64,000 nt of DNA from the NCBI GenBank assembly GCA_977020255.1, contig CDROCS010005690.1:62001-126000 (forward strand), in the 5' to 3' direction. Shown here piece after piece: positions 4,952 through 61,147 of this stretch. Position 1 is the stretch's first letter; every line of letters starts with the position of its first letter. The position numbers and the translations under genes are program-made. Below the pieces are notes generated by a model, which saw only the letters and a program-made list of their open reading frames with translations, did no database searches and was not told the origin of the DNA. This DNA is from Obrimoposthia wandeli (taxonomy: Eukaryota).

Positions 4952-5125
4952 TCTCTTACTTCCATACTAACGTGTTTTGATGACATCGCCGTCGAATATA
5001 TACGTCGGACCTTTTGTATCCGCATCTTTTTGTATTTCCCTCACAATTCGCCTTCTTCGCTTGCATCCGGCGAAAGTTGATGATATTCGGTCAAGTGTGC
5101 GCTGTCGGTCAGCTTCGTAGTCCAT

Positions 5126-5521
5126 TCATAATTGATTCAGTAATCTGTTTTGTGGATAAAATATCGCTTCATTCACTATGTTATCCTGAATCCTTTCATC
5201 TAGATACACAAGTACTTGGTTCGTTGGTCCATTCGGTCTCTTCATTTTCACAAACTGGAATCTTTTACTATCGGTTCTCATAGATCGGAGACATTTTCGG
5301 ATAAACCACACATCAATTAGTCCTATCAACACTAATAGCATCATCAGTGCCGGTGTATTGTACTGTATGATGTAGTTGTTGATTTCTTTGAACCATGAAC
5401 TATTTCCGTGGTCCGAGCCTATCTCTTGTGCTCCCGTTATCGGAATTAGACAACTTAACAAGCCTAGTGCTAGCAATCTTTGGTATTGATAGCTGGGAAC
5501 TGTTGTTGTAGCTTCATTTGT
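5126..5521 (-). CDS. Small type-I membrane protein
   Basis: Signal-like LLALGLLSCLIPITGA and TM ALMMLLVLIGLIDVWFI. In frame with the upstream DSP2 ORF across one TAA. Confidence 0.6.
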   Translation of the reverse strand, partial: TNEATTTVPSYQYQRLLALGLLSCLIPITGAQEIGSDHGNSSWFKEINNYIIQYNTPALMMLLVLIGLIDVWFIRKCLRSMRTDSKRFQFVKMKRPNGPTNQVLVYLDERIQDNIVNEAIFYPQNRLLNQL

Positions 5522-6100
5522 TTATCGTTGTTGCTTCCTTTTTTCGGAGTATTTCTCTATTTCTCGAACGAGTAACGGTTTGAATTCCGTATCTGGTCTA
5601 TTCTGTTTGATATAAACCATCGCTTCCTCTGGTGTATGACCATGGTACTCTACCAACAAGGATACACCTATGGTAGGAGCTAACATTGTACCTTTTTTCT
5701 GGTATATCAGAACGCCGTTTCCTTCTGTGACTTCGGCTTGGATGGTTTGAGTCAACTTCATCAGGTGTTGTTGTGCATCGTTTATCTCTCGATTGGAAGC
5801 ATGTATGTATCGAGTTGTGTCATCTTCAGTATGTTGACACAGACTGATTATCTCATTTCCGACTTCAACAATATTAATTACTCGGTTGATACTGTGGAAC
5901 TTTAATCCAGCAGTATCTATATCTCCTGGATGACATAGAAATACTTTTGGCATTATCTGCGTAATTTTGTCGACTCCAGCTAAGAATAAACCGGTCAACG
6001 ATAGTGCTTGAAGAAAATTCTTTTTCTTTGGATCCTCGGGGATGTCGTCCATCCGTCTCTGTTCTTGCAACATGAGTTGGTAATTTGACAATTGTCCCAA
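5522..6100 (-). CDS. C-terminal helix of DSP1 plus a second, catalytically dead dual-specificity phosphatase domain
   Basis: Starts (L)GQLSNYQ, the expected end of DSP1 after a frameshift near 6105. Then ITQIMPKVFL, INRVINI, VLIYQKKGTMLAPT (HCxxGxxR lost) and EAMVYIKQNRP. Confidence 0.75.
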   Translation of the reverse strand: MGQLSNYQLMLQEQRRMDDIPEDPKKKNFLQALSLTGLFLAGVDKITQIMPKVFLCHPGDIDTAGLKFHSINRVINIVEVGNEIISLCQHTEDDTTRYIHASNREINDAQQHLMKLTQTIQAEVTEGNGVLIYQKKGTMLAPTIGVSLLVEYHGHTPEEAMVYIKQNRPDTEFKPLLVREIEKYSEKRKQQR

Positions 6101-7740
6101 AAAATTAAGGTTGCAATACTTCTTCTTTCCTGTAGGTATTTCAGCGCTTCTAGTACCTGCATTCGTCTAGTCTTTATTAGATACGCTAATACTAGAGTTG
6201 CTGATCGGGAGATTCCTTTCTGACAATGTACCAACACTTTTCCTTGGTTTTGGAGTTCTCTGTGAAGTATCTCGTTTGTTTCTACGAACCATTCGAGAAG
6301 ATTAGCTTCCATTGAGTCTTTTACTCTTAATGTCATAGCTCTGATCGTCTGATATTGCGATTTGTGATTCATTGTAACATTGATCACGTATGTTATCCCT
6401 TGTTCCAACAGTTTCTTTTCGTCTGTTGCATCTTCCACATTTCCGAGGTATAACTTATCTGGAATGATCTCACTCATTGGTGGCATTAATTCTGACTCTT
6501 CAAGGTTTAGTCTTTCTAATCTCTTCTCTATTTGTTCGTCACATTCGTTCACTTCTCGCATAACTTCGAATATGTCTTCAATTCGGCTATTTGTTATCAC
6601 TCTGCCTACTATTAGGGCTGATTTTCCTTCTGGAATCTCGTCACTGTTATCGAAATCGGGTGCTTTTCCCATTTGGATTTCTGGTACGTTTGAAGTTTTC
6701 AGTTTCAAAAGAAATGGACAATTTGGTGCATCTCTTTTATGACGTTTCATTGGGTTTTCATTGTTCTCCCACTTTCTAAACTTTACTCTACACCATACGC
6801 ATCGTACTACTTCCCCATGACCATAACTACTTGTCGCGTTTAACATTTGTAAACCTGTTCTTGCCATTTTACGTGACATTTCTTTTGAATAGTACGGTTC
6901 TAGTGATCTTCGTCTATTTTTCTCGATTCTCAAGGGATCTTTTTCTGACAGATTCACATATGTTATTTTCCTCCTCGTCATAGCTTGTGGTCCGGAGTTT
7001 ACATCTTTGTAGTGAAGTATCGACTTTACTAGCGCTTCCTGTTTCCTATCTTGGTACGGATTTCCCATACGGAACATAGTGTATTTTTCCTTTTCGACTA
7101 TAGGTCCTCTCAACATTTTTATCTCACTCACTGAACTGTCGTTCTTAAAACTCTTGTTGTTTGGTAATATAATTATTCTTTCAAACATCCGTATTACGTC
7201 CATCCCAATCATGACTGGACTACCACAATCTGTGAATATTCTAGCATTTAACTGTAATGCTCTTCCATCGATATTTAACGAACATTTCAGTGTTCCTTCT
7301 GACACTACATCTGTACCATTCACGTTAAAAAATGTCTGTTTTCTAGGACATACTTTTCTTAATTCTTTTGATGACAATATTTCTTTACTCAATACTGATA
7401 CTGCAGATCCAGTATCAACTTCAGCAAGATATTCTCTTCCGTTCAGTGTTACTGCTACTTGTGGTGGAGCATTTGGATTCTCATTGGATATCCTAGACTT
7501 TAGAATTCTTCTAGAATTATCTTTTTTGTCTTTTTCCTCTGCTTGCGGAATCTCACTGTAGTTTACCTTAGGCCATCTTATCATTAAAATGCCTCTCTTG
7601 AATTTTTCCTTCTCTTCTTTTAGTTCCTTCATTGGATATAGGTTTAGCGCCACTTCTTCCTTGTCTGGTAACGGAATCTTTGGTTTTCCTGGTATCTTTG
7701 CATATTCTCCTGGGCTATCATTATCGTCGTCGTTGTCGTC
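5995..7740 (-). CDS. Retropepsin aspartic protease - BIR - dual-specificity phosphatase polyprotein segment
   Basis: AEVDTGSAVSVL and VMIGMDVI (protease, ~7165-7467); CVWC-x16-H-x6-C (BIR, ~6706-6927); SEIIPDKLYLGN and VLVHCQKGISRSATLVLAYL (DSP, ~6110-6483). The frame is open up to 7740, directly after the env TGA. Confidence 0.92.
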   Translation of the reverse strand, partial: DDNDDDNDSPGEYAKIPGKPKIPLPDKEEVALNLYPMKELKEEKEKFKRGILMIRWPKVNYSEIPQAEEKDKKDNSRRILKSRISNENPNAPPQVAVTLNGREYLAEVDTGSAVSVLSKEILSSKELRKVCPRKQTFFNVNGTDVVSEGTLKCSLNIDGRALQLNARIFTDCGSPVMIGMDVIRMFERIIILPNNKSFKNDSSVSEIKMLRGPIVEKEKYTMFRMGNPYQDRKQEALVKSILHYKDVNSGPQAMTRRKITYVNLSEKDPLRIEKNRRRSLEPYYSKEMSRKMARTGLQMLNATSSYGHGEVVRCVWCRVKFRKWENNENPMKRHKRDAPNCPFLLKLKTSNVPEIQMGKAPDFDNSDEIPEGKSALIVGRVITNSRIEDIFEVMREVNECDEQIEKRLERLNLEESELMPPMSEIIPDKLYLGNVEDATDEKKLLEQGITYVINVTMNHKSQYQTIRAMTLRVKDSMEANLLEWFVETNEILHRELQNQGKVLVHCQKGISRSATLVLAYLIKTRRMQVLEALKYLQERRSIATLIFWDNCQITNSCCKNRDGWTTSPRIQRKRIFFKHYR

Positions 7741-9527
7741 TCAATAGTTTCTTGGGTCTCGCATCATGGTTCTTGTTTGATGTTGCTCCTTCTTGAGGGC
7801 TCGCAACTCGTTCTCGTGATGATGGTGCATTAGATATTTTGCTAAAAATGGAAAACATCCAATTATAAGTTGCCAGGTGATTCTGGTTATCCTGTATAAA
7901 CTATACGTAGACAACACCTGGGCTATAATTACCTGCACAAATTTAATTATAACATAAATACCTATGATACCCGAAAATAATTGTCCTAAAACAAGGAATT
8001 TCCCCCACATCTTTCTAAGTGTCTGATGTGCTGCTTCCTTGAAATGACTTGGCGATAACAACATATCAAAATTCGCATATCTAGCTCCTGGCGGTAATGC
8101 TCGATGTACCATCTCCGTAAGTACTCTGGCCCTTTTTACTGGAAACATTATTTCGTTCCAGGCCGCTTTTAAGTCTTTTTCATTGTACAAACCTGCGTTC
8201 TCCATATTTTCTACCGCTTCGAATTTCATTTTTCCTTTAAGATTCGTCATTTTTATCATCTCTGGAGTTTTCGTTGGCTTTCGGTCAGGTAGCGTTATCC
8301 ATAGATCATTCGTCATCTGATATTCAGGTGCCATTATATTAGAGCAGCTGATTTCTTTAGTTGGAGTGTCTTTTGGAAGTATCATTCTCGTGATTGGTTC
8401 AACAAAGAGTTCTTTTAAATTATGCGTTACTGTCAATTCACTCGTACATCGGTTTGTTGTTCTCAACTGTACTTCTACTTTATTACACTTGTAAGTATAC
8501 AATACTTATCCCATGGTTTTAGCAAATACTCCTTCATCCAAGGGTAATATTGGTGCTACCATGTCTGGATTCGTAATAGCTAATGCTAACTTTGTTCTTA
8601 CGATCTCTTTGTTTAGCTGGCAATCTCTCTCGATCATCATCCGATATAACTGTTCCATTTGCATCAATTCTTTATGATAATAAAAATCAATTTTATTATT
8701 AAAATACGTGTGTAGCTGCATATCTCTAGGTTTTAGCTTGGTTTCTGCCAATGCTATTAATTCTCTAGACAAAACTATTCCTGGATAGTTTGTAGTACTA
8801 ACAGTCATTCCGCATCGCGCTTTGTTTCTCTTTTTAATAAATATCAATCCTTCTTTTGTTGATGTTGCCATTAACAGTGTAGGTGTCGCCGTCATAGGAA
8901 TTGGTCTTGTTTCATTATGAAATCCTTCTCCAACTTTATTATACAGGAACCCTTCTCCATCTTTATTATACAGGAACCCTTTTATTTTATTAAAGCTAAT
9001 TTCTTTCAAAAATACTAAAGAGCATTGTTTCGGATTCACGTGATACACAATTGTGGATTCACCTGTAAAACAAGATGCATCTGTCATTCTACATTCCGGA
9101 TACTTCATCATTCGTTGTGTCTTTTTATCAAAATTGGAGGTCCATGTTTTTAATTCGATCTGGTAAGTTACGTCCATTACTAACTCTGTTACTTTGATTC
9201 CACGCACGTTTTTTATTCCTCCGTCACAAGATCCATCAGGCCATCGTTGTCTTCGCAATCTCTCGGAAAAACCTCATGTGGTTTGTACGGTTTGGTAGGT
9301 GTGATTTCCGACATAAAACTTCTATGGCCACTATAGAATTCGTGATAACTTGAATGGACTGAACATTCTTTCACTTCTACTTGTATTTTATCAACATCCT
9401 GATACACAAAGTAGTTTTCAATACCTTTAACTTCTAATTTTGACGGTTGTGATTCTGGACAGTCTTCGCTGTCAAGCAGTGAATACTTTTTTTCCATCTT
9501 TGGTATGCTACAGTCGTATGCTATCAA
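7741..9527 (-). pseudogene. env: Envelope glycoprotein, chuvirus-G / herpes gB-like (class III) type; frameshift near 9245 and nonsense TAA at 8506-8508
   Basis: Mature N-terminus LIAYDC...YSLLDSEDC; CGMTVSTTNYPG; LHTYFNNK; DCQLNKEIVRTKLALA..NP; MG*VLYTYKC.KVEVQLR..CTSELTV..F..P.TR; C-terminal TM (LVLGQLFSGIIGIYVIIKFVQVII). Confidence 0.85.
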
Positions 9528-11096
9528 CCCTGATGCCTGTTGCATTCCTATGAACATTACTAACATCATCATCATCATCGTTGTGGAAATATTTGGTTGA
9601 TTGTTTCTTTCTTTCGGACGGTATTGTTTATTTTCCCTTTGACGATTCTCATGACATTGTTCGTCATCGTTTTCGTTCATTTCCACAATGGTTTTAGCGT
9701 AGTCACTTAATTTTGCCCAACCTCCGTTTTCGTCAATTCGTCTCTGCAATACATTCTCGATCAAATACATCGCTTCATTTATTCCTTGTTTGACTTCGTG
9801 AGGTTGGCTCGTTCGTTCCGTCAATTGGAAACATAGATATGTGATTGCTGTAATTAACTTTTTATTTGTAGTCTGGTTTCCACATAATCTCGCTAAAACT
9901 TCACCGTCATAAAATCTATCTATTGATGCATGGTATACATGATTCGCAGTCATTCTCTTTACTGCAGACATTTGTGATCTAACTGCTTTGGTCAAATTGT
10001 CTGTTATATCGGTTGTTTCATCTTTGTACATTTTGAACAACTTCGGCTTCACTTGCCTGAGAATTCCCGTAAGTATATCTTTACTACTTGGCGCTTCCGA
10101 ATTCATATCACCTCTGATATCTTCATTTCGCTCCGTACTATACTGCTCCAATGACGCTGCTAGCTGTCCAATGCTTAGATGTCTCTCCTCATCAGTTTGT
10201 GGTGCAGTTAGAACATTTCGTAATATACTTCCGTCCTTTCTAGGTCTTCCAGGTCCTCTTCGAAAATACTGATACTCAGTTTGATTCTCTCCTGGATCAT
10301 ATGGTTCACCATTATACTGTATCTCTTGACTTGGTCCTTCTTCATGGCCAATCTCTTCGTTTTGTCGCATCATCTGCTCTGCTTGTCTATCTCTGTATGC
10401 AGCATGCCAAATTGGTGAATCCAAATCTACAATTTCGGAGATTTCGTCTTCTCCTACTAGTTGGGTTACGTTTTCGTTTTGTCTCACTTGGTTGGCTATA
10501 TCCGTGACTTCATCTTGTCCGGTTTGAATTATCTCTGGTTCTGGTGGTACTTCGACCACCGGAGTCGTCAACTCATTTTCTAGTTCCACGTCTTGTAATT
10601 CAGCTACGTACGGTTCTGGTGTGGATGTCTTGTTCCAAGCTTCAGCTACATCATTATCTCCGCTTTCGCTTGAACTGTCTAAAATTTCTATAGGCGTTTT
10701 TATCATTTCTAATGCAGAGTTTAATATCTCCGTTAATCCTTCATTATCTACTAACTCTTGACGTCCTACAGTGATGACATCAATTTTTTCCTCTAATTCA
10801 TTTCCTATCGGATATCCACACTCGACTGGTACGTCCTCATCATCTAGTGATCTCCCTTTATAATGGAACAACATATTCATTTCATCAATTTCAAGTTTCT
10901 CGGCCAACTTTTTTCGAATAGTTTTCATCGTTTGATACACGTTAAGTTTTTCATGTATTATCTGTCCGGAAATTAATCGAAGAGAAATTTTCATCGTTCC
11001 TTTTTGGTTTGATCTCTGCACGTAACGACCATATCCTTTCAATAATCCTCGTGATACTTCTTTGTAACCCAAGTTATCATGACTATGTTTAACCAA
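9213..11096 (-). CDS. Ubiquitin/SUMO-like domain - AT-hook - Bcl-2-like domain - signal peptide - env N-terminus
   Basis: MKISLRLISGQII...LFHYKGRSLDDEDVP (UBL, ~10767-10994); RRGPGRPRK (AT-hook); YLIENVLQRRIDENGGWAKL (BH2-like); MMMMMLVMFIGMQQASG followed by LIAYDC. Confidence 0.8.
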   Translation of the reverse strand: MVKHSHDNLGYKEVSRGLLKGYGRYVQRSNQKGTMKISLRLISGQIIHEKLNVYQTMKTIRKKLAEKLEIDEMNMLFHYKGRSLDDEDVPVECGYPIGNELEEKIDVITVGRQELVDNEGLTEILNSALEMIKTPIEILDSSSESGDNDVAEAWNKTSTPEPYVAELQDVELENELTTPVVEVPPEPEIIQTGQDEVTDIANQVRQNENVTQLVGEDEISEIVDLDSPIWHAAYRDRQAEQMMRQNEEIGHEEGPSQEIQYNGEPYDPGENQTEYQYFRRGPGRPRKDGSILRNVLTAPQTDEERHLSIGQLAASLEQYSTERNEDIRGDMNSEAPSSKDILTGILRQVKPKLFKMYKDETTDITDNLTKAVRSQMSAVKRMTANHVYHASIDRFYDGEVLARLCGNQTTNKKLITAITYLCFQLTERTSQPHEVKQGINEAMYLIENVLQRRIDENGGWAKLSDYAKTIVEMNENDDEQCHENRQRENKQYRPKERNNQPNISTTMMMMMLVMFIGMQQASGLIAYDCSIPKMEKKYSLLDSEDCPESQPSKLEVKGIENYFVYQDVDKIQVEVKECSVHSSYHEFYSGHRSFMSEITPTKPYKPHEVFPRDCEDNDGLMDLVTEE

Positions 11097-11428
11097 TTCT
11101 GCTCCACTTCTTCCAATCTGTGCACTTTAATTGTTTGCAATTTGGCCAAAACTTCTGGAGCTTCACTCGTTTCATCTAACGGTTGATTCAACGTCTCCTT
11201 AGCTTCACTAATTATCTTTTTTACATTTTCCATACTCGTAGCATTTCTTGCTGCTTCTATGTGATCAGTCATAGGTTGTGCGTTACACGTTTTCTCTATT
11301 GGTGTCTCATACGCTTCTAGCATTCGGTTTATTAAATCATTCATCTCCTCTCTCGAGTGTAGACTTTTTCGTGTTTCGACAACGTAGATGAATTCGCCAT
11401 CTTTGTGTGTGTATATCAAATATATCAA
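11039..11428 (-). CDS. N-terminal ORF of the cargo region, unknown function; probably frameshift-linked to 9213-11096
   Basis: 129 aa helical-looking ORF overlapping the next ORF. A candidate ATG at 11400 would join this frame if a 2-nt AG duplication were removed. Confidence 0.45.
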   Translation of the reverse strand: MIYLIYTHKDGEFIYVVETRKSLHSREEMNDLINRMLEAYETPIEKTCNAQPMTDHIEAARNATSMENVKKIISEAKETLNQPLDETSEAPEVLAKLQTIKVHRLEEVEQNWLNIVMITWVTKKYHEDY

Positions 11429-18129: not shown

Positions 18130-18516
18130 ATGGATAAATTTATTAAAAAGATCAATACAAGTCCATTGATACGAAAAAGAATAACAGCAGGAGATAATAG
18201 TATGCCGCATTTTCCCAAAACGTTTGGAGTTCCGCTCAAAAAACTTCTAGAGAGAGAAGATATTTCAAAAATACCTAATGTAGTTCTTATTATATGCAAC
18301 TTTCTTTTGCTGGACGGCATCGATACAGAGGGAATATTTCGTGTAAATGGAAATACAAAAGCTGTAGAGAGTATAAAAGCAATGTTTGAGGAACACCATT
18401 CTCCGAGCATGTCTAATTGTACGGATGTACACGCTGTCGCATCAGTGTTAAAGTGCTTTCTTCGAGAACTACCGGATGGCTTGGTTCCTGAGAAAATAAC
18501 GCTTCAGCTGTTTGAT
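18130..18516 (+). CDS. FAM13A: FAM13 exon 1 (RhoGAP N-half)
   Basis: FGVPL...EGIFRVNG (arginine finger present)...LRELPDGLVP; donor GTAAGT at 18517. Confidence 0.92.
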
Positions 18517-21500
18517 GTAAGTCAAGAATTTTTTATTTTTATCGTAATCTGTACTAGTTTTGATTATTTTAAGACGTTTTGGGTTCATGCATGATTGTAA
18601 TTTTCACTTTTCGACTCTGTCTTTAACTTCATATTCATTATGTAAGTCTAGTTATAATGCATTCTAAACATTTTATAGAAAATTAATAGTTGTAACAGTT
18701 TGATATCTGAAATTTACTTTCACTATTATAATTTTAAACAAATTATTATATTGTACTTTTTTACATTCATATAAATGACACTTATGCCAAATTGATTAAT
18801 ATATACATAATAGTTTTCGATACAAAATGATCAATTTAAAAGTTGTACAAACATTAAAAAACAGTATGAAAACATTTAATTTTGTTGGTTATTGTGGATT
18901 TAAAAAAGCTTGAAATTAACTTTTGACAGAACCCACCAAGGTCTCTTCCGGTTTTTGAAATGATGATTATTAAAAGGTGACTTCTTATTTTAACTCTCAT
19001 TATGTTACAGTCCATTTTACCTCTTTCAATTTGGGAGCTTTAAATCGGTTTATTTATTTGCTAAATTCTTCAAACAATTAATTTTGTATTTTAATTATTT
19101 TACAATAAATTACATCATTTTTTAGAATTGTAATTTATGCTTAGATACAAATTAGTCTTTTCCCACATATTGTGCGACTAATTTCTTATGATATTCAAAC
19201 ATGCAACATACACAAATTTGATAACAAAACTATATTTTCCATCTTTTTAAAAGCTTTTATTCATTCTATACTTCTGATCAACTTTTATTTGGCACTTTCA
19301 TAACTTCTTTCATGAATTTGATTTATAATATTTTCTGGCCCTTCATATACTGTTGTCTTTGTTTTTTATCGTTATTTTTCTAAGATATGATGGGCATATT
19401 TAAATTTCCTTTTATATATATACTATTTCGTCAACACATTCTCTGAATATTTTCTTTCCAAACATGATTTCTGATCGAGATTTGCCAATGGCATTTTGCA
19501 TGTTGTTTTCACGTTAAACTTTATTTCTGGCAGTAATTCCACCCACCTTTGCATCTCTAATGGTACGAAAATTCCTATCAATTTGACTATTAGCTGAATA
19601 ATGCTATGAACTCGACTGATGCAAAACATTGTAAAACTCACCCAATTCTTTCATCAAAGTGTTTTTGAAACTTTCTGTATGTATGACTCTTGAAGCTTAA
19701 CATTTGTTTTTCAGTTCATTCAAAATAGTTCTTCCATCTTGAGTGTTGGTTGCATTTAATCAGCATGCCATAAATTCCTATGATCGTTTCTTTTTATTTA
19801 TGGTATTCAAATTTCAACATCAATTGTTTTTACGATATCAATTGTTACTTTAAATTTTGTATTCTTATTTAACTTAACAACTGTTGGCCAGATAATTCAC
19901 TTTTGTTTACCATCATACTTGTTTTCGATCCCAATAAATTGTTTGGACGCGTGATGGGCCTTCCCGGCAAATTATATCGACATTCAAGCTGCATAAGTAC
20001 TTCATCCAGGTCTGTACTTGCGGAGTCATTGGCTTCTTTGTTTTTATCATAAATGTTATAGCTTTATGATCTGTTCTAAGCTTGAACCTAGCATTTGTAT
20101 CTTATATAAATTATTTCTTATAACCTGGATATGCCAAACTGGAGCATAATTACTACCACACGGGTTTTCTAATACTTTCAAAAACTTTCTAACATAATTT
20201 GCTAATCTTAAGAGGTTTCTTCATTTTTTTAAAAACTCGTTTAAATTCAGCAATTGTCTTTTTTGCTTTCAACCCTTTTCATTAAGATTATGTCACAGAA
20301 ATTAATCGATGAACTTGATCTTATAGATGTATTCGGAATAGAATAAAACGTTTGTAAAAAGGAATATCTACAATTTCTTTCCCGTATTCCCCGTTTCATT
20401 TGTGTATAGTTTAGGTATATTTATCACAGCATAGTTTATCAATTTCCAACAAAACAATATATTCATAATGTCATGTTGAATGGGATTAGGCAATTTTTTA
20501 CTGATTAAAGTAGGTTTGTTTTAAGGTTGAAGTTCGGGGATTGTTTTGAAAGTATGGTGTTAATGTTTCAATAAATTATTAAAACAAATAATTAATTATG
20601 TAATTAAAAAATTTCATAAAACTTTTGATCTCTCCTATACAAGAAATGGCTCTGGTTTTTCTAGATTGAATTTTACAATCAATTAATTGTACAACCACAA
20701 TGAAATACCCAAAAAAGAACCGTTCTCAAAATTTTTAAAAATAGATAAAGAAAAGTAAAAATAGAAACTGATTTTGCAAATGAATTAGAATGGAATTATC
20801 ACAGGTGTCGCCTATTTACAATTGACCTGGCTGTACTTATTCCCAGCCTCAATCCAGTCCTATGTACTTCAGCGGCGGGTTTATCTGACTGTCAGATACG
20901 CTGCTTTTCTCTCTTTCGCGGTTTAGTCGCCCATCAACATGACGACGGGCCTAATTAACCAATTAGGGAGATACTATTTACTCTTTCTCTCTGTTGTCTT
21001 TTATTCATAATTGAGGGTTTTTCTTTTATCTAAATTAAGATAGAGTTAAACGTACATATAAACATTAAAAAAACAAAAGTGGTCTTTGATTGACGGTAAC
21101 GGAGGACGGGGTGGGTTAATGCTTCGTTTCGAAGTTGATTAAGCTTCACAATGGTCAAAAGATAAACATTTCTATTAACTAATGAAGGCCTTTGCTTAAA
21201 CAATTTTCTATGTAGAATTTTCCTGAATTTTTAATTTCACCTGGATCTCCAGGAAGTTGTTATGTAACCATTGGCTTCTTTCGGTGTACATCGAGGTTCG
21301 GAAAGTGTGTGGGAGGTTCATCTTCATCTTTAATCATCTTTTCATAGCAAGTCACAATGTGTTTTGAAGATGGATCTCATTCCTTTAGTTTCTGTAATTC
21401 GTTTATCTGATGATGTATCTATTTCCAAATTTTTACTTTACCAAACTGCAAAATATGTAAGACTTTGGTGAGCATTTGTATTCACTAGCTCCTTAAAATT

Positions 21501-24500
21501 TGTTGCATCAACAACAGTTTCCGGACGATCTTGATTCTCAGTTCAAAGGCCTGTGTTGCCGTAATATATATTTTAAAAATTGAGTTTTCTAACGTTTACT
21601 GTGCTTTCTCCCAGTGTTTATTTGCGTTTCCGATAGCCTCTGACACACTATAGAACGTTCCAACAAAGAAGATTGAACCCCAGGAAAGTTTTCTTGTCCC
21701 AAATTGCTCAATATGGCGCTATGGTGGCTGACTGGCACACACGCTGTTGTTTTGGTATCACCAGCGGATGTGTATGTAGATCGAGTCGAGTGTTGGCGTG
21801 AAGAAGCTGTTGTTCACATGATGTATGTTCAGCTAAGATATAAACTATCTAGAGTATAGAACGGTGCGAAACTGAGTCTCGGTGGTCTGCTATGTAGGAC
21901 ATCGATGAAAATGCAGTCAGTGAGCTATTTTAGTATCAAAGTAACAATGACTCTACGATGTCTGTATTTATTTAATACCGTGCACATTTCAATGGTGCTG
22001 AAGCCACATAAGCAGCACCAGAAAAATTGCAGATTGATATTGTAAATGGAGACAGTTTTAAAACAACAATCTTCATCCGTGGACGACAACTAAGTCATTG
22101 CGATTTTGTTTTGCCACTTGAATAAGTTGAAAGTGAGTACGAGTAAAATTTCATCAATATAATGTCAGCTGTATAAAACTACAATGAGTGAGACTGGCAA
22201 TTGCTATGTATTTAGCCAGCTCTATATAAAAACGCCACCAATCACATCACGTCTGGAATTGTAAGTGGCGGGCAGAAAGTGATGTGACCGGTAGGCTTTA
22301 ACAAAAACACACAAAAGGTAAACTTTAATGCATAAAAATTTTCCCAAGTAGGAAACAGAAACACACACTGATTACACAATAACATCATAGGTCATTCTTT
22401 GGAATGCTGTAATCCAGTTTGTCTCTGGTTCTTGTGTGTCAAGTATGTCCCGTGAGGGTTTGTTTGCAGGGTTCTGCTCTGTAGGTATGAACTGTACCTC
22501 GATTCGCTTAATTGTAACCAACATTTGGACTGCCACAATTATCCACCACTCCTGTATATCGCTGGGAATTCTCTTGGTTTTAGTCGTCCAAACTAAACCT
22601 TGATTATCGCATAGAATTGTACATCCGGTTCTTCCCATCCAAAGCCTTAGCCTCCTGAATAAGAATAGTTCTCTCTGGGATTTTGAGTGCTGCATGGACT
22701 GTTCGCATCTGTGGCCCATAACTCTGTATATGGGATCTCGTTCCATTTCCATGTAGATGCCTGTCTTTGTAAAAGGTTAAAACACTTCTCACGTAAATCT
22801 TTATGCAAATAATTTTCCGTAAAAGGCCATCTCAATACGTTTGCCACATAATTTGCGTATCCTATGGCCTGTGGTGAATAATCTTTCTCTAAAACTAACT
22901 TTTATATGTACTCCACTTTTCATTTGACAAGCTCACTTGTTGTGTCATCAGGTGTATCAGTTGTGTCATACCACAATATAGAACTTGGCGAGCAGGCGTC
23001 AATTGCGATTTTTCCAAATTTACTTGTGGGTTCCATTTATCTAAAAAGGTTTTAAGATTTTCCCACATAGGGCTTTCCATAGGCGCCACGATTAAAATGT
23101 CATCGATGTGAACATGAATTAACGGAATCTTCCAAAACCTTTGAAATATTTTCATTATTGTCGTTAATGTCCATTGTAAGATGGCCGGACTTTGCCTCAG
23201 GCCCATCGGCAGCCTTGTAAATCGGTAATATTGGCCGAGCAATATTTTTTAAAGTTTAGCGCCATCGCCTACTATCGCCAACTTTGAGGACCACAGGTTT
23301 AAATGAAGATGGACTTTTGTTTATGTTCTATTTCCAATTTTAAAAATTTAAAGGAAACTAATTTAATGAATTCCTCAGGAGTTGTTCAGAGATTTATCCG
23401 GAGTTATCTAGAAGCAAAAATGTTGGACATAATTGAATATAGCTTTGAAGCAAATTTGTCTTTGAACGTACTTTAAGTAGACTACAGTTGCACGAATTGC
23501 CGTCGTCAGCAACGAATTCCGAGAGATTCGTGAATTATCACAGTTTCTCGTTACCCACGCTACTTTTGTTACAACACTTAATCACCCTATCAGTGTCGTT
23601 GGTTCACGTGCGCTATCGAGTATCAGTTTTCAAGTAATTTCCAACGGGATTGTTTTCAGCTATTTGCAGAACTACATCTGTCTGCTTCCATATGTCTATA
23701 AATCATTTTATTTAACATGATATACAGTCGGTTTATAAAGTCTTTACGAAGGTTTTCTTTAATGAAAAAAATTAACATATGTCCGGATGAAAGATTTTTT
23801 AAGATAAATAAATCGAAAAAAATTAAACATTTAAATTAGTATGAAAAATCTTAAACTTATTACTCGTCAAGACCTCTTTTGAAAGTGGGTGCTCCAACAA
23901 CTTTAGCCACATGAAAATCTTCAAAAAGACATAGATTTTGTCACCCTATTTGTACTGAAGTAGTACGCAACATTGGCGAAACATTTTGGGCGATTGGGAG
24001 TGTCTGTGATGCCTCAAGCAATAGACGACCTCGATCTCTGACGAAAATGTAGAAAGAATCGTAACTGTTGCAGGGGACATTCAACAGACTGTCACTCGGA
24101 ACTGCACCAACAAGTTCAATCTCTTTGTAGATCATAATCCAAAAATCACCTATGAGAAAGATTTTGAAAGAATATCTCAAGTGGCGAACGTATGGCATTC
24201 GAATTCTTCATGACCTGAAGGAGAAAGGCTATCGAGTTAAATTTACCATATGGATCCTCTCAAGAATAACTGATCATTGACTATTTTATCATTCATTGTT
24301 TTTTCCTGATGAGGCCCATTTCCCGTCAAGATGAGACAACACTCCACATAACGAGAAACGTGGTTTTATTATACCATCTGTTTGGAAAACATTTCCATCA
24401 AATCTGGTCACAATGTTCTCCTGATTTGGCTCCGCCAGACTATTCCTTATGGGCAGCTCTCAAAGCTAGTCTATGAACAACAACCATAAACAATTTTTGC

Positions 24501-27500
24501 TCCCAAGGAAGAAATACGCCGCCAAATAGAGGCTTTTGACATCAATCATTTGGTAAAGGCTGTGGTAAGCTTTCCCGATCGTGTGCAAATAGTTTTGGAT
24601 GTGAACGGTGGAAATTTTGAGCATTTATATTGATCTATCATAAATCGCTGTAGTTATAACGTATAAATATACGGTTTTTGAAAGTTTATACTTGATAACC
24701 AGTTTTTAATTTCCAAATAAACCTTCTTAAAGACTTTATAACGTATCTGTAAACTTAATATCTGGTTCCGAAAAATGACTCTGTATTACGACGCCTCATT
24801 GTCGATTTTGCGCATCTTACGCCACATTTGCCGAAACTATAAAAAAATAAACCCGATATATTGTAATTTAATTAAGTATTTCTTTAAAGTCAGCTAATCG
24901 TAAAAAAAATATTTATCGTAAATCGTTATGCTGATTAAAACATATATAGTTTATAGTTCTCAAATACATTATTAAGTTTTATTAAACTTTACAGGTAGAG
25001 AGAGACTGGCGATTTCATCTATTTAGCCAGCTCTTATAATAATCTCACACCAATCACATCACGCCTGGAATTGTAGATGGTAGGCTAAAGAGTGACGTGA
25101 TGGCGAGAGCAAACAACCTCAGGAATAAAACATAAAAATATACAGACATAAAAATTGTTCCAAGTGGAACTTTAGGACACATCAGTTAACATCTCCCTAA
25201 AAGCAGTTTCCCAATGGGTTTCTTGTGCCTCTGTCTGTTCTAGCACCTCCCATGATTGTGCATCCGCGGGGTTTTGTTCTGAGATAATGAACTGTACATT
25301 AAGTCTTTTAGTGGTCACCAATATTTGAACTGCGAGTATGACCCAGCCGTCAATCATGTTGCTCGGGATTTGCTTTGTGGTCCATACAAGCCCTTGATTG
25401 TCACAGAACAATGTTGATTCCTTCTGCGCCATCCAGCAGGCCCAAAGTAGAGCCTTGGCCTCCTGCACATAGATATTTTGCTCCGGGACTCGTAATGCTA
25501 GATGTATTCGTCGCCGAGGCTTCAGTTGCATCACTGCCACCGAAGTTGTAGTCGCATCCGTGACCCAGAGTTCAGAAGTAAGCTTGGTCCATTGCTAGGT
25601 GTGGGCATACGTCTGCAAGAAACGAAAACATTTCGACCGTAAACCTGAATGTAAATAGTTAACTGCGTAGGGCCATTTCAGGACTTGGGCTACGTAATTC
25701 GCAAATCATGTTGCTTCGGCTGAATAATCTTCTTTTGTGATGATGTCATCATATGAATCCCATTTCTCGGCGGACAGACTCACCTGTTGTGCAACCACGT
25801 CAAGTTGCATGCTGCAATAGGTCATGTTGTATGCTGGTATTAGCTGGGACTTTGTCTCGTTAATTTGCAAATTCCATTTTGCGAAGAAAGTCTTAATATT
25901 ATCCCACATCTTCGTGTTTCTTGGCGCGATTATTAATATGTCATCTATGTGCACATACACCATAGCGATATTCCAAATACGCTGGAAACGTTTCATGATT
26001 AGAGTCAGCGTCCACTGGAGGATCGCCGGACTTTGTCGGAGTCCCATTGGCAATCTTGTAAAACGATAAAATCTATCGTGATGCCAGAAATTTGTTATGT
26101 GCCTGGATTTCTTTTCTAACGGCATTTGATAAAATGCGCCTGTTAGGTCTATTCTGACAGCCATCATACCCGAAGGGATTTGTTTGAGCTTCTCTGCGAG
26201 ATTCGGGATTCGCATATATAGTTTCGGCAAATGTTGCGTAAGAGGCGCAAAATCGACAATGAGGCGTCGTAATACAGAGTCATTTTTCGGAATCATTCGA
26301 ATTTCAGAACTATAAACTATATATGTTTTACGATAAATATTTTTTTGCAAACGTAATACCAATCTTTGTACATAAAATGTTAATTTGATTTAACAAAAAT
26401 AATGTTAAAAGCTTTTACGATTTTCTGACTTTAAAGAAATACTTAATTAAATTACAATATATCGGGTTTATCCGATGTAGATCCAATTTGGGAAAAATCC
26501 CAATTTAATTCTCTCTCCTGATTAGTTGCACGAATGTATTGTGACTATTTTCAGAAAACTTTCCTATTTGACTATTGCCAAAGTCATTTAGGTAATAAAT
26601 CAAATATTAGAGACTAAATGTCTGAGACCATTAGTTTTCGTCGTTTATCGATTATTTAGCGATCTTTTCCCTATACATGGCTTTTTTAGGGAAAGTTATG
26701 TAGTAAAATTTATGACCCCCTATTGATTTTTCTTAAATTAGAAGAATAGTTTTTCAATCGATTAATTTATGAATTACTGTTAAAAATTAGTACATCACAG
26801 TTACCATTCAGTTTTGGAAATATTTTTCTTGTTTACAAAAGCTGTTGGACGTTTGTTGTCAGAAACAATGGATAATTTGTATTGTATCTGATCTTACAAG
26901 GGGGCTCGTTGTGACAAATATGATTGGTGTGTAGCAGGAGACGCCCGTTTATAGTACTGCATCAATTGTCCATAAATACGCATGCCACATGCACTGACAG
27001 CACACTCAATTGACATCTCACTACATTCCCACTCAGTGTCGAAAATATAATTATACAACTCGTAGTCTATTTGCTTTAGTTAATGTGAAAAAACAACAAA
27101 ACAACTGTATTGTGTGTTTGTATTTATTTTTCTGGTTTCTTTAATTATATATTGCATTACATCACAGTTCACAGTTGCAGGCGACAGTGACGCGACTTTT
27201 AAAACTGAAATATTAATTAAGAACTAGATAAGTTAATACTTATTAATGTGAGTATAGTATTTTTGATTAATTTCATTATATCTTTACGTTTATGGATTAC
27301 ATTTTAATACAGTAGATTCCACTTATAACAAACGCGCTTATGACAAAAACTCGTTTATAAAAAACAATTTTAAACATTCTCAGGAAAATTAGTATGTATT
27401 AAATTAAGCCAATTTCGAATAATAAACCATTTTCCTGGCCCCTTCAATGTTGTCAATAACAGATTACAATTTTTAAAATTTGCTTAGGCTTTTATTAACA

Positions 27501-30500
27501 TTTATATTTTAAAGAAATACACATGCATTTAAACAAATAAAGAATGATAAGGTTGACACAATTAGTTAAATATTCAAGTAAAATAATTAAAGTGCATGAA
27601 TAATTATTATTTACTTGATTTATTTTTGTCAAATACGTAAAAGGCCAAGTGGTAAGCATTTTTCAACTCGTCCATCTCCACACTGTAGGTCTACAGTCAG
27701 AATCTCAGCGATCACGATGCCTGCATCGACGAGTTTAAGATCATTCTGCGACTTCTGCCAGATGAGAACTTCCATCTGCTGAAGTACCTCTGTCATTTTC
27801 TCAGTCAAATCGTGGAGAAAGAGTCTAACAACAAGATGGATTTCAAGAATCTCGGGATCGTGTTTGGACCGAATATCTTCAAGCTCAGTCAGGGGATTGA
27901 GGTTAGTAAATACCACCTTGTCGGCATCCACCCAACTAAGGCTGATTCGTTGAACAGGGTGATAATGGGGCATTGTGGAACAATTCTTGAAAATCAAATA
28001 AAAGTTGATAACTGCACCATAGTTTTTAGCGTTTTTTATACCCTTAAAATAAACAGGGTGACAATGGGGTATTGTGGAAAAACCGAAAAATTCTTGAAAA
28101 TCAAATAAAAGTTGATAACTGCATCATAGTTTTAGCGATTTTTATACCCTTAAAATAAACGAAAATATCTAATATAGCATTAATTTATTAATAATTGTAG
28201 AATTATTTATCAAAGGTACTTTATAAAATTTTTGAGCAGTTATCTGTAGTATTTAATATGTCCTCCGATGTCTTCAATACTATTACACCTTAGCGGTTTG
28301 GAAAATTATTATAAAGTCGGTATGCATACACCCGGAAAAGACGGTATCCTCTTCGAGTTTGATCTTTGAATTGCCAGGCTTCTATTATAGTAATTGGAAT
28401 TTCAATTTTTTTGAAGTTTTTATAAATATGGAGATAACTTTAAATCTAAAGATTTTTAAATCAATAGAACTATATTTGAGTATTTTTCGACAGCCAATGT
28501 AGTTCAAATGTATAGTTGTCATCCCTCTTTATTTTATAGATAATTTCTAAATAATCCTCATTTGTTTGTTCATATTTGCTTGAAATCTGTTCAGGTAAAA
28601 TTGGGGAAGATTGTACAATAATTATTTGTGGAGGTCTAACCTGGAGGTGACAATACATATGGTATTGGTTTCTTTTGATATTTATTTCCCCGAATTTACT
28701 TATTCTTATTTGTTAGTTTAAACTTTTTACAATATTTTAGCAAAATCCATATTTAGTTTCTTACCAAGAATAAATCCCAAATTATTGATTAAAACTTTAG
28801 TTTACATCTCATTAGTACCTACTTTTATGTAGCATTCTAACTGATTTAATAATGTAAGTATTCCATGATCCAGAAATATTGCATTATGTTTTTCTTCATT
28901 TTATTCAAGCTGAGTCGTCCTTGAAAATGAGCAACTATATATATGGTCGTCAAGTCCAAGGAGAATCATGAAAAGTGAATGTTGTTTAAAATTTATTAAC
29001 TAAATTGTTTAGCGCGGTTAGAGTTAAATCTGTTTTGGATTTGAGTCCTTTAGATGTTGAAAACATACGAAGTATTTGAGTAGGGCATTTCTTGCCTTTG
29101 TAAATAACACTGCACAAATAACAAACGATAATGCATAGAAATTTTTGGCGACATTAAACTTATATAATGTAAATAATGAATCTGAATGGGTGATGAATTT
29201 ATTTATATTATACATTACAAATTATAAACAAATTCCTTATTTTTTAAAAATAGCAACCAATTAAAAACTAGTTTTTCTATGATAACCTTGTATTTTCAAT
29301 TTTCTGAACTTCTCCATATGACCTTGAATTACAGGCAATATATAGCTGTATGAAACCCAATTTCAGATGTATTGAATATATTCTTAATCATATTGATTTT
29401 ATGTAAGACATATAATTTTGAAATTATCTTTGCAGGGTTTCAAGATGCAGACGTCTCTAAACAACATTTTCACGATTCTCATCTCCAACTACAAACTGCT
29501 CTTCAGGTCCAGCAGTTCGCAACGAGATGTGACAGCGGGCTCAGGATATTTGATGGATACGCAGCTCATCACTCAAACGTGAGTTCTTTTGGGTATCTAT
29601 AGATATAGAGACAGCTTCAAATACCTGTTTTGTACAATGAGATAGCGAAAGGAAAAAATCTTCAAATTTTAAACGTTTTAAAATACAAAATATCGAAATT
29701 AAATGTACAAAATTTTTATCGAGGTTGCGTCATATTGAGGCTGCTAACATTTCCATTATCAGCTAGTTCAGTGATATCTCCCACCCCGCCACAGATTGTC
29801 CACCGATGGCCACAAGTCAAGCCCGTCATTGAGTGGTGACTTCGATCTGAGTAGCAGCAACGACAACCATCTGTACTCTGTGCCGCCGCTGCTCCCACTG
29901 CCCAGTGTCTCCTCCGACCTTCAGCGCGTCATCAGCTCCTGTGTGGACTCTCATCTCTCTCTGGGGACCCCACAAGTTGGGGACGACCTTGAGCACACGA
30001 GCGCCACAACCATCACTACTACCAATTCCGTCACGGGCACCACAAATACGGCGGTGGCCTCCAAGGCAGTCGATGTGAGTCAGCTCCGCCTAACTCCCAC
30101 TATGAAAAATGTAGCGCAACTGCAATTTGAAGAGATTTTCCTAAAATTTAGAGTAGGTTATACAATTTTGCAATTCATTATTTTTTGTAACTTAGAAAAT
30201 TATGAAATTGTAATTTTTGAACATGTAATACTTTTTTAATTATAGTTTTTATTTATTTATTGTGATTCATTGAGAATCAGTTGCTTTCTTTTCGTAGAAA
30301 TTGTATTTCAATGTCAGTGCAATCACTATCGTCTTTCTTGTGTGCTCATAAATTGTCCTATAAATCATCAAATTTCCGATCATCAAACATTCCAATTTGA
30401 AGCAGACGTTTCTAATCAATTTAAATTAAGTGTCCAGAAGATTAGCGGAGGTCTGAAGAATGAGCCACTTATTGCAAGAAAACTTAACACCTGTTTAAGA

Positions 30501-45689: not shown

Positions 45690-48420
45690 ATCAACTTCTC
45701 CTCTGAGTTATGGAGTAACTATGACAGTGATAGTGAGATAGTGAGTGAGTGAGCGAGTGAGTGAATAAGTGAACGAGCAAGTGTGCGAATGCAGTATGTG
45801 TGTGTTAAAAGTAGTCCGTGGTGTTGAGGATGTTTGGGATGTGGTGAATGGTCTTGCTGATGTTGAAAGTTACGTTTTTGTGTTTTCTTTCATTTTGTGT
45901 GACGATTTTTATTCGTCGGTTGTTGATGGTGTAAGGTTTATTTGATTTGATGATGGTTGTATTGTTGTTTTGATGTTTTATTATTATGTTGTATGTTCCG
46001 TTGTATTTTGGTTGCAAGGATGGTGTGTTGTCTAGTTTGATAAATGCTTGATCGTGTATGGTTGTTGGTTTTGTGAATGGTTTTCAGATAGTGTTGAAGT
46101 TGTATTGTTGTGTATTGTGTTTGAAAATTATTTGTGCTGAATACAGGTTGTCTTCTTTGTGTGTAGTGTTTGTGATGTCGTGTAGTGTTTTGTGTAGGTT
46201 GTCAGTTGTTATTGGTGTTTGAAAAAGCAAGGCTTTCTTTTATTCTCCTGTTTAGGCGTTCGATTTTACTGTTGGATTGAAGTTTTGTGCAGTTGTTGTG
46301 ATTTTTTAATGTTGTATTGTTGACACATAATTAAAACAAAATTGGACTCAAATTGTCGCCTTCTATCTGATATTATCTCAGCTGGATATCCGCAGCATTC
46401 AAACCATTCTCTTCGTAATGTGTGAGTTATTGTGTTTGTGTCGATTGCATGTATGGCTATGGCTTCTGTTCAGTTGGTGGGGTTGTAAATTATGGTCAGT
46501 AGGTATTTGTCTTTATGGTTGGTTGGTAATGGACCTACGATGTCGATATGAATTGTTTGGAATGGGTGTCTTGCTTTGATGTTGAGTTGTTTGATTGGTG
46601 CTTGTTTTTGTGTTTTGTTTAGATTATATTGTTTACATTGTGTGATGAATGTTTGGATTTGTTTTTGCATGTATGGTGAGACGTAGTTTTGTTTGATTAT
46701 GTTGAATTTACCTTTGTTACCGATGTAGTGATTGTTGTGATGATGTTCTATGCATTTCCTTTGTAAGTGTATTAGTAGAATTAATCCTTTCGTTCCGGGA
46801 TTGTTTGTGTCATACCATATGTAATTTTGTTTTGTGAATTTGAAACTATTGTATCAGAAAAGTGTCATTGTGTCTTGTTGTTTGTGTTTGATTTCTTTTT
46901 CATTTAATAGAGGATCGAATGTTATGGTTTTGTTATGTTCAATTCGTGATAGAGTGTCTGCGACTATGTTTGCGTTGCCTGAGATGTGTTTGATTGTGCA
47001 GTTAAATTGTAAGATGTAATTTATTTGTCTGATTTGGCGTGATGAGGATGTGGAGAATCGGTTTGCGATCTGTGTATAATGTGAATGTGTTGCCTTCTAA
47101 GTATGTCTTGAAATGTTTGATCACCTCATATATTGCTAATAGTTATCTTTCAAAGGTAGAATATTTTGTTTAGTGTTTTTTAATTTTTTTAAAAAGAATG
47201 CGAATGGTGTGGGTGGGTATTTTGTTAATTTGTTTAGTACTGCTTCTATGGCATGATTCGATGCGTCTGTGGTGAGAGTTAGTAAAGCGTTTAAAATTGT
47301 GAAGTGTAATGTTGTTGTGTCTGTAAGTGCTTGTTAATGTGATTTTTGCTTGTTTGGGTTTGTTTTTTATCAATTGGTGTAGAGGTGCTAGTATTTCGGC
47401 GCAGTTCGGAATGTGTCTATGGTAAAAGTACACCATACCTAAAAAGCTTCTGATTTCTTTGTTTGTGGTTGGTGTTGGCATATTGTTGTTAGTTTTTGTT
47501 TTACTTAGTAAAGGTCTTATTTGATTGTGCGATATGCCATGGCATAGGAATTCTATGTTTGTTTGATAGTATATGCATTTTTATTGTTGATCTGGAGATT
47601 TTTGTTGTTGAGTATGTTTTTGACGTGTTTTATATCTTTGGTGTGTTCTGCGTGACTGTTGCTTCCTTTTTAAATGTCGTCAATATACGTTACTATGTTG
47701 TTTGTTTTGTGAATTGTTGATCCATAAAACGTTGGAAGGTTGCCGCTGAGATTTGTAGACCAAAAGGTATTTTAATATATTCGAAAAGTCCAAAAGGTGC
47801 GATTATTGCGGTTTTACTGATATTTTCTGTGTGCATAGAAATGTTGTGATAGGCGGATGTGAGATCAATTTTGCTGAAGATTGTAGCGTGTATTAAACGT
47901 GTGGTGATGTTTCTTATGAGTGGAAGTGGATAAGAGTCTGATGTTGTTATTGTGTTTAACATTCTGTAGTCTCCGCAGCGTCTCCATGTTTGGTCTTTTT
48001 TTGTTACATCATGCGATCTCATGATCATGATGAGTTGGACTTTTGTATTATGTATTGTTTTTCTAACTCAGTGAATGTTTGTTTTGTAGCTGCTAGTTTG
48101 TCTGGAGGGGGTTGTCTTACTTTGGTGTGACATGGTCTCTCATTTGTTATGATTTTTGTTATTTTTTTCCTATGTGTGCGACGTTGGTGTGATAATTTGT
48201 TTGATTGTTCAAGAATATCAGGGTTTTATTTTTGCAATCTATAAGTATGTTGTAGTATGCTAGGAAATCGGAGCCTAGTATTGCTTGTTGACAATGATGA
48301 AAAGCCATTTCTGTGGTTTGTTATTTAGTGTGATGGTAATTTCTGTCTCACCGTATGCAGAAATGTTATTGCCATTTGCTGCGTGAAGTTGGTTGAATGA
48401 TGTATAAATTGGTGTATATT
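45690..48420 (-). mobile_element. Degenerate Gypsy element (RT, RNase H, integrase, PPT)
   Basis: KKDQTWRRCGDYRMLN, FSKIDLTSAYH, PFGL; EIRSFLGM; IHIDIVGPLP; PPT AGAGGAGAAG (45704-45695) before TGTGGTGG at 45690. Confidence 0.85.
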
Positions 48421-57939: not shown

Positions 57940-58136
57940 TTTTTTTAGTATAGTTTTTTAAAATTTTAGATCCCTATGACACCTTGACTCTAACTTTTTG
58001 TTATTTCAAAACATTTTTTAGGTTGGGCTTTATCTTTGCTGACAGATCTCGGGATGTTGTGTTTAATAAATGTATTAAAAAAAAATTCGTCTTATGTCTT
58101 TTATTATTTTACCCTTATATTTTTAGGGATTTAAAA

Positions 58137-58367
58137 TTAGTCTAAATTAGTACCATCCCGATTTAATACTTTTATTTGAACATAAAGCAAAGTATCATTC
58201 AAATCTAAATACTTGCTATTGGAACCATTAATATTAAATTCTAAATCGGTTAAAGTGGTTCCTGAAACTGAGTTAACTAGAAATATTTCTTCAAAGGAAG
58301 CATTATCTACAACTACTTGTGGAAGCGGTTTATCAAAATTACACAATTCAGTTTTGGCGCAACTCAT
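58137..58367 (-). pseudogene. Maverick major capsid protein, N-terminal 76 aa only
   Basis: CAKTELCNFDKPLPQ...LEFNINGSNSKYLDLNDTLLYVQIKV..DG. Confidence 0.8.
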
Positions 58368-58672
58368 TTTGCAAATATTGTTCCTTCAACTTTCTTACGT
58401 TTGTTTATATTGATTTTTTGCTTCTTTTTACTTTTAAATCCACTGCCTCATTGGCTTTTATTTGATTTACGTTTTCTAATCAAATTAGCAACTTCAGGTA
58501 AAACATTATCAAGTTCATCAAGCGCATGCTTCTTAAAAGTTGGTATTAGTTGGTATTATAATCTACCTAATGTTCTAAGCCAGCCAGATCCATATTGTTT
58601 ACCAACAAAATATGGTAATTCTCCACCTTGTTGGCTTTGACTATAAGCTTCAATTATTGCTGGATTCGCCAT
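58366..58672 (-). pseudogene. Small basic core-like protein with QxGG/QxGxG motifs (two stops)
   Basis: MANPAIIEAYSQSQQGGELPYFVGKQYGSGWLRTLGR...; Lys-rich tail; its stop overlaps the capsid ATG (ATGA). Confidence 0.65.
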
Positions 58673-58693
58673 TTTGTTTTCTTAAATGTATTG

Positions 58694-60785: not shown

Positions 60786-60817
60786 CCATATCTTTAACTG
60801 ATTTTATAAATAATTGT

Positions 60818-61147
60818 TTATGAACGTGTCGCAGCTATAATACTACTGATAATTGAAGCAACAACTGTAATAACAGCCCCTATGAAACCACCATTCTGTT
60901 TAAGAATAATATTTTGTTTCCTTTTTTTACTTTTTACATTAGCAATATCTAGAAGAGTTTTTCTATATTTCTTTAATATATTTTTCCGATTTCCAACTTT
61001 TACTCGACCCAAAACTATATTATATAAAACTTCCAATAAATCCTCTACAACAAAGGATGGAAATGCTTTAAGAATAATCATTCTCTTATTAGAAGAGGCT
61101 TTGACTAAAGCTTTAAAATAGGGTATGCTTCTTTGTATTTTCTTCAT
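60818..61147 (-). CDS. Conserved small Maverick protein ending QNGGF plus hydrophobic tail
   Basis: EVLYNIVLG...KQNGGFIGAVITVVASII. Confidence 0.7.
   Translation of the reverse strand: MKKIQRSIPYFKALVKASSNKRMIILKAFPSFVVEDLLEVLYNIVLGRVKVGNRKNILKKYRKTLLDIANVKSKKRKQNIILKQNGGFIGAVITVVASIISSIIAATRS

Follow-up and report, generated by a model that had tools for sequence, protein, structure and literature searches.

Two decayed intronic copies in Obrimoposthia wandeli as probable remnants of a HEART-like element with a hepadnavirus-allied polymerase

A 64,000-nucleotide stretch of the genome of Obrimoposthia wandeli (GenBank assembly GCA_977020255.1, contig CDROCS010005690.1, positions 62,001 to 126,000 of the forward strand; hereafter the window, numbered from its first letter) carries, in one intron of a RhoGAP-domain gene, two copies of a reverse transcriptase (RT)-RNase H coding region. 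Both copies, together with a non-coding block at the 3′ side of each, lie antisense to the host gene. We conclude that the copies are probably dead inserts of a hepadnavirus-allied element that resembled the retroelements named HEART and had a P-type polymerase. The polymerase of this source element is likely to belong within a hepadnavirus-allied radiation of P-like proteins, near HEART and the proto-nackednaviruses, and not with the RTs of DIRS or long terminal repeat (LTR) elements. Copy 1 and copy 2 are today nothing beyond added intron length. The locus comprises the following features, with the evidence for each in brackets.

25172–26374, minus strand: copy 1, an RT-RNase H polymerase-like remnant (motifs, RVT_1, colinear tblastn matches, AlphaFold2 models)
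22372–23242, minus strand: copy 2, the C-terminal half of an RT with its RNase H (tblastn, RVT_1, group profiles)
24992–25105, minus strand: 3′ block of copy 1, with two hairpins, a TATA-like box and CAGT (copy comparison, folding)
22180–22292, minus strand: 3′ block of copy 2, with the same two hairpins, a TATA-like box and CAGT (copy comparison, folding)
26301–26471, minus strand: segment 5′ of the copy 1 RT that recurs in the inverted duplicate (inverted repeats, alignment)
24702–24965, plus strand: scrambled inverted duplicate of the 5′ end of copy 1 (inverted repeats I1–I3, tblastn, alignment)
18517–27688, plus strand: host intron of the RhoGAP-domain gene, GT..AG, 9172 nt (flanking exons, splice sites)

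A preliminary description of this DNA had proposed a frame of ~396 codons with a series of polymerase motifs. All of these, namely RLIVDF, PNL, IPSGM, IDLTGAFYQMPL, LPMGLRQSP, HIDD, TDATTT and NPAD, are indeed found in one minus-strand frame (25262–26266), and copy 1 counts 396 codons from the first residue that can be aligned with relatives to the natural stop, broken by two in-frame stops and no frameshift. Its RT piece matches the Pfam family RVT_1 at E 3.1e-18, and its best relative among 1.84 billion (1.84e9) representative proteins was found by phmmer at E 3.6e-35, so that the RT similarity lies far beyond chance. In tblastn comparisons, four relatives (P0009, P0010, P0011 and P0007) run colinear with copy 1 from the start of the RT through the final residues. 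Where at least 85% of the relatives agree in an alignment column, copy 1 retains the conserved residue at 17 of 21 RT columns and at 9 of 10 RNase H columns, and it keeps both catalytic Asp residues of the RT box as well as the D, E, D and D columns of the RNase H. AlphaFold2, run on the relatives' alignments, models the RT piece with a mean predicted local distance difference test score of 92.3 and the RNase H piece, as a canonical RNase H fold, with 85.5. The 5′ truncation of copy 1 reaches the start of the RT, so that it lacks the N-terminal 200–300 residues present in its relatives; the segment at 26301–26471 resembles none of the relatives' N-terminal parts, and these parts, taken from 15 relatives, find no match in the window.

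In the phmmer scan of this set, 239 proteins reached E≤1e-10 and a single one E≤1e-30. The best matches with a single RT domain are proteins of 450–700 aa in which the RT starts at residue 200–320 and an RNase H forms the C-terminus; Gypsy polyproteins of 2000–3500 residues also rank high, because the scores of their two to three RT copies add up. The 54 nearest relatives fall into clades W and X, which together hold 38 proteins, and clade Y, which holds 16; a DIRS-like clade Z contains 24 further proteins. Apart from the RT, the sole Pfam family seen in the 54 nearest relatives is PF00336 (DNA_pol_viral_C), matched by 7 of the 38 in W+X and by 8 of the 16 in Y (15 of 54 overall, best E 1e-9). 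Five of these proteins (P0003, P0009, P0010, P0011 and P0151), each checked singly, exceed the curated cut-off of 22.4 bits. No tyrosine recombinase, methyltransferase, integrase, endonuclease, protease or RT_RNaseH domain was found by Pfam in the 54 proteins, and none of the relatives matches PF00242, the N-terminal P domain. Clade Z includes five members with Dam, one with a tyrosine recombinase (Phage_integrase), seven with RT_RNaseH and four with PF00336 matches that stay below the cut-off.

Most relatives come from contigs of 1–4.4 kb. An open reading frame (ORF) stands before the P gene in L002 and L004 and after it in L006; such neighbouring ORFs match nothing in Pfam or the PDB, do not resemble one another and are without a homolog in the window. 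On the 3-kb contig L002, two called genes (1–2907) are a single frame of 968 codons, with an extension of ~590 residues before the RT. P0007 and P0029, whose N-terminal domains are 40% identical, are located in contigs rich in transposable elements, of 277 kb and 15.6 kb respectively, and since these stand beside the small contigs of the other members, the family spans episome-sized as well as integrated forms. The 15.6-kb contig L088 (GC 44%) has its clade X P-like gene integrated at 7426–9544; one break sets off the RNase H part of this gene as an ORF of its own, and next to it, tail-to-tail, lies an RT that is unrelated. Wider searches yielded no named hepadna-like comparators: the family profile drew mostly Gypsy and DIRS matches from a set of 5.8e9, a search with the RNase H only had the query itself as sole match, and scans of IMG/VR gave one Gypsy element or nothing. 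A further 80 metagenome loci are Gypsy-like or other RTs, because they score at most 115 bits, compared with 199–259 bits for true relatives.

Neighbour-joining trees of the RT domains of 162 phmmer matches pair the window RT with P0001, in a clade W that also contains P0004, P0006, P0009, P0016, P0022 and P0067. Clades X and Y come next, and the DIRS-like clade Z is the outermost of the non-Gypsy groups. Group profiles built without the window sequence score the window RT at 190 bits for W, 160 for X, 146 for Y, 130 for the DIRS-like and 96 for the Gypsy-like group, and they score its RNase H at 65 bits for W+X and 39 for Y versus 8 and 2 for the DIRS-like and Gypsy-like groups, which makes the RNase H a sharper discriminator than the RT. 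The motif contrast to DIRS and Gypsy elements drawn in the preliminary description is borne out by the alignment columns: P-M-G occurs in 8 of 9 W, 22 of 29 X and 11 of 15 Y proteins (41/53) versus 2/21 DIRS-like and 3/81 Gypsy-like ones, and D-A-T is found in 13 of 18 P-like proteins versus D-A-S in 10 of 11 DIRS-like and 32 of 40 Gypsy-like proteins. A His occupies the first place of the catalytic box in 6/9 proteins of W, all 29 of X, none of the 15 of Y, none of the 21 DIRS-like and 4 of the 81 Gypsy-like proteins; judged from these alignments, it is a signature of the family.

HEART were described by Gong & Han 2018 as hepadnavirus-like retroelements (cited in PMC12691608, PMC11551314 and PMC12440569), and these three papers portray a sister group of the Blubervirales with few sequences, altered conserved RT residues and an unresolved mobilisation. 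All seven HEART rows of the supplementary alignment of PMC12691608 come from Ixodes ticks; by eye, five of the seven have His in the catalytic box and all seven have Asp-Asn and P-F-G, while the proto-nackednavirus rows shown there have Tyr, Asp-Asp and P-M-G. The window copies resemble HEART in being integrated into an invertebrate-type genome, in consisting only of RT and RNase H without integrase or recombinase, in their decay, in the His of the catalytic box (present in the window and in 35/38 proteins of W+X) and in a similar block before P-x-G. They differ in having Asp-Asp and P-M-G where the HEART rows have Asp-Asn and P-F-G, and in an RT identity of ~24% by hand count, versus 30–38% to metagenomic relatives. 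The locus is intronic and, like HEART, a chromosomal RT-RNase H without integrase or recombinase; its relation to the Blubervirales is indirect, and the clade to which it belongs joins, in its motif columns, the HEART His with the viral P-M-G and an intact Asp-Asp.

With the P protein of the Blubervirales (Hepadnaviridae, nackedna- and proto-nackednaviruses), the relatives share the order of N-terminal extension, RT and C-terminal RNase H, the lack of protease and integrase, RNase H domains that pass DNA_pol_viral_C, and the common P-M-G and D-A-T columns. Several relatives also have an ORF flanking P on contigs of ~3 kb, as genomes with C and P do, and avihepadnaviral P is the best named structural match outside the retrotransposons. 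The differences are that a terminal-protein domain, a core gene, DR1/DR2 repeats and a demonstrable epsilon are all absent from the window, that the family has His where the viruses have Tyr in the catalytic box, that the window copy is chromosomal and dead, and that PF00242 is unmatched in the relatives. What appears to link the copies to the Blubervirales is the RNase H, together with the domain architecture and the Pfam model. Of the earlier proposal of a hepadnavirus relation, the relation as such is supported by the RNase H profiles, by PF00336 in the relatives and by the architecture, but its wording as a hepadnavirus-ancestral lineage, and as one in a further host group, exceeds the evidence.

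The second copy lies 2.8 kb from the first in the same orientation, and its 5′ truncation goes further than that of copy 1. Its RT matches RVT_1 at E 1.7e-10, its RNase H piece reaches 14.7 bits (E 0.02) against PF00336, below the 22.4-bit cut-off, and at least two frameshifts can be deduced from matches that fall in three frames. The two copies are 54–63% identical in amino acids, and the proportion of non-synonymous differences between them (pN) is 0.23–0.27 with synonymous sites saturated, which argues that they diverged as selected, working genes before insertion and hence are independent inserts of two lineages and not products of a local duplication. Copy 2 looks the older of the two inserts and comes from a diverged lineage within the family. 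An arrangement in tandem or as a concatemer was considered and rejected, as the stretches that follow copy 1 and copy 2 have no homology to each other. Between the copies, a short ORF at 24309–24476 (plus strand) has C-terminal residues reminiscent of the tail of a mariner/Tc1 transposase; this resemblance is unconfirmed, and the ORF has no Pfam match.

The intronic setting claimed in the preliminary description is confirmed by the host gene, in which the GT..AG intron splits the RhoGAP domain between two plus-strand exons (Pfam profile positions 1–84 and 84–146). The first exon ends at 18516 and is followed by GTAAGT; the next begins at 27689 after AG, in phase. These exons, 18130–18516 and 27689–27903, have canonical splice sites, the second ending at a GT donor (~27903), and the gene extends past the examined part. 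Just downstream of the second exon, at 27953–28160, stand two tandem copies of a ~106-nt unit that are 87–97% identical.

Beyond copy 1, copy 2 and the inverted duplicate, no further copy of the family was found in the 64 kb. The duplicate consists of a 79-nt RT-coding segment and two upstream segments in permuted order, 96–97% identical to copy 1; because it is scrambled RT coding sequence of such high identity, we take it for a recent local rearrangement and not for a terminal repeat. Neither copy has a definable terminal repeat, target-site duplication or poly(A) tail, the repeat search found no LTRs at the locus, and no short direct repeats of the DR1/DR2 kind are conserved. An Rfam search and exact look-ups of ORFs of the window gave no match, and homology searching with a neighbouring ORF yielded generic phosphatases only. 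The preliminary description had seen no terminal protein, core, envelope or integrase. This holds in the window searches, which yielded no homolog of a recombinase, methyltransferase, N-terminal P-like domain or core-like protein in the 64 kb, and integrase and protease are absent from the inserts.

Past the stop codon, ~110 nt are 82% identical between the two copies, compared with 68–70% for the coding part, and this better preservation implies that the source elements were under selection for a non-coding function here. The two 3′ blocks fold alike into two hairpins, with z-scores of -3.3 and -2.4, and the antisense strand folds less well. The first hairpin of copy 1 is composed of a stem, a 6-nt bulge on the 5′ side, a second stem and a loop; this stem-bulge-stem-loop is known from two sequences only and is not a demonstrable epsilon. 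Read as DNA, both blocks contain ATTGG and then a TATA-like box before a CAGT initiator-like site, at a distance of 31 nt in copy 1 and 33 nt in copy 2, and copy 1 has an AATAAA 24 nt beyond CAGT. Searched with a covariance model of the block, neither the window nor the surroundings of the relatives' genes gave another copy. A promoter right after the polymerase stop would imply a circular or terminally redundant template, and for a rotifer proto-nackednavirus that very layout is reported, with a terminal redundancy of ~33 nt (PMC12691608). LTR elements have this layout as well.

The source element would have encoded a P-like protein with an N-terminal domain, an RT and an RNase H, and would have been transcribed from the TATA/initiator-like promoter just past the polymerase stop. 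As it has no integration enzyme, host DNA repair, or some other route that depends on the host, may have brought it into the chromosome, which fits the differing 5′ truncations, the common 3′ end and the inverted patchwork duplication. Between capture of linear DNA by host repair and an autonomous retrotransposition route, we give the two roughly equal weight.

A number of observations weigh against a hepadnavirus-allied origin. The RNase H piece of copy 1 has no PF00336 match in Pfam, and DIRS-like RNase H domains also touch this model weakly, at 18–20 bits. The trees contain no named hepadna-, nackedna-, proto-nackedna- or HEART sequences, the bootstrap of the window's clade is 21–45%, and the split from the Gypsy-like RTs stands at ~65%. 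In a hand count over ~115 columns, the window RT shares ~24% of residues with one row of HEART and ~22% with the rows of proto-nackednaviruses, no more than its mean identity of 25% to DIRS-like RTs (27–34% to the P-like groups), and hence a link to the named Blubervirales is not demonstrated by the RT alone. Structure does not discriminate either: in a Foldseek search of BFVD with the RT model, rank 1 is the RT of an errantivirus, a virus that PMC9328524 classifies in the Metaviridae. Also, the promoter role of the 3′ block and the mode of integration are read from two sequences and by analogy. In favour of a hepadnavirus-allied origin, ranks 2 and 3 in BFVD are the P proteins of duck and wood-duck hepatitis B virus, with small margins over caulimoviral and retroviral RTs. 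The RNase H model matches RNase H folds generally, with the highest identity to hepatitis B virus P (21–24%) though not the best rank.

It is improbable, though a good deal less so than a Gypsy origin, that the copies are a fragment of a DIRS-like tyrosine-recombinase retrotransposon (DIRS, Ngaro, PAT) that lacks its recombinase and methyltransferase, with the inverted repeat as a trace of the DIRS terminal repeats. DIRS-like RTs are the next nearest labelled ones, at 130 versus 146–190 bits and 25% versus 27–34% mean identity; the family profile draws proteins combining RT with recombinase and RT with Dam at E 1e-34, DIRS-like RNase H domains are faintly hepadna-like in Pfam, and an inverted duplication does flank the RT. 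Yet recombinase and Dam occur in 0/54 members of the nearest clades, and no recombinase or methyltransferase homolog is present across the 64 kb, where the recombinase part of P0154 gave no tblastn match at E≤1. The RNase H of the window is also of another type, P-F-G and D-A-S mark the DIRS-like RTs where the window has P-M-G and D-A-T, and repeat searches for inverted or split direct terminal repeats of the DIRS type found only the scrambled duplicate, a recent rearrangement of RT coding sequence. Least likely is a worn fragment of a Ty3/Gypsy (Metaviridae) or other LTR retrotransposon. The window RT has the general fold of the Ty3/Gypsy RTs and shares their broad branch of eukaryotic RTs; by sequence, Ty3 and HIV RTs are its best matches in a library of solved structures without hepadnaviral P, an errantivirus RT tops BFVD, and Gypsy polyproteins are among the phmmer matches. 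Those polyproteins owe their scores to two to three RT copies each, the Gypsy-like profile gives the window only 96 bits (RT) and 2 bits (RNase H) per domain, and neither the window pieces nor the 54 relatives have an RT_RNaseH-type domain, an integrase or a protease, nor are there LTRs, so that this origin is close to refuted.

A more serious alternative, to which we still give distinctly less credence than to dead inserts of a hepadnavirus-allied element, holds that the copies stem from a HEART-type element which was a genuine retrotransposon, with a mode of insertion of its own and a preference for sites near earlier copies, in place of chance viral integration. In its favour, a single intron holds two diverged lineages, equally oriented and 2.8 kb from each other, and the window has no other copy; a common 3′ end with differing 5′ cuts is typical of copying from the 3′ end, P0007 and P0029 sit among transposable elements, and HEART is called a retroelement in the literature, which leaves its mobilisation unresolved (PMC12440569). 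Against this, endonuclease, integrase and recombinase are found in 0/54 relatives, neither terminal repeats nor a target-site duplication or poly(A) tail can be defined here, and most relatives are on contigs of 2–4 kb, the size of an episomal genome.

The origin of hepatitis B-like viruses is an open question, and the chromosomal relatives described so far, in the alignment of PMC12691608, are seven degraded HEART sequences from ticks with a mutated catalytic box. With this locus come two further copies, better preserved and of two lineages, in which the catalytic Asp pair and every catalytic column of the RNase H are intact. It connects them with a sizeable family of metagenomic P-like proteins, unnamed and full-length, that can be compared with HEART and proto-nackednaviruses, and it contributes a candidate cis-element, the 3′ block. 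Should a formal tree confirm the placement, the diversity sampled at the transition from retroelement to virus becomes wider, and if the family is DIRS-derived, the finding is ordinary. A bolder reading, which we consider rather unlikely, is that W and X, marked by a His-x-Asp-Asp catalytic box, P-M-G, a C-terminal RNase H of hepadna type and a long N-terminal domain, form an undescribed lineage between tick HEART and proto-nackednaviruses that has repeatedly entered animal germ lines, with the 3′ block as promoter, short terminal redundancy and epsilon-like hairpin of a pregenome-type RNA; the hepadnaviral layout of replication would then reach back to chromosomal elements of invertebrates.

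Elsewhere in the window, the only other RT lies at 47696–48067 (minus strand) and is unrelated to the copies, as the Gypsy-like profile gives it 116 bits versus at most 45 from the P-like and DIRS-like ones. The 2 kb at 46001–48000 stand well apart from the remainder of the window, with a GC skew of +0.44 and an AT skew of -0.36. Long ORFs follow one another at 2756–11428 on the minus strand: three pieces match the fusion glycoprotein of Monjiviricetes (rhabdovirus-type), and next comes an ORF in which an aspartyl protease, a BIR (IAP) domain and a dual-specificity phosphatase are fused. Another phosphatase ORF and a 731-aa ORF without Pfam match complete the run. A retroelement would not usually have such a set, whose genes look captured or viral. 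Finally, 55971–61976 contains DNA_pol_B_2 on the plus strand and, on the minus strand, rve integrase pieces (59855–60785) and a Pox_A32-like packaging ATPase (61329–61976), which is the gene set of a Maverick/Polinton-like element.

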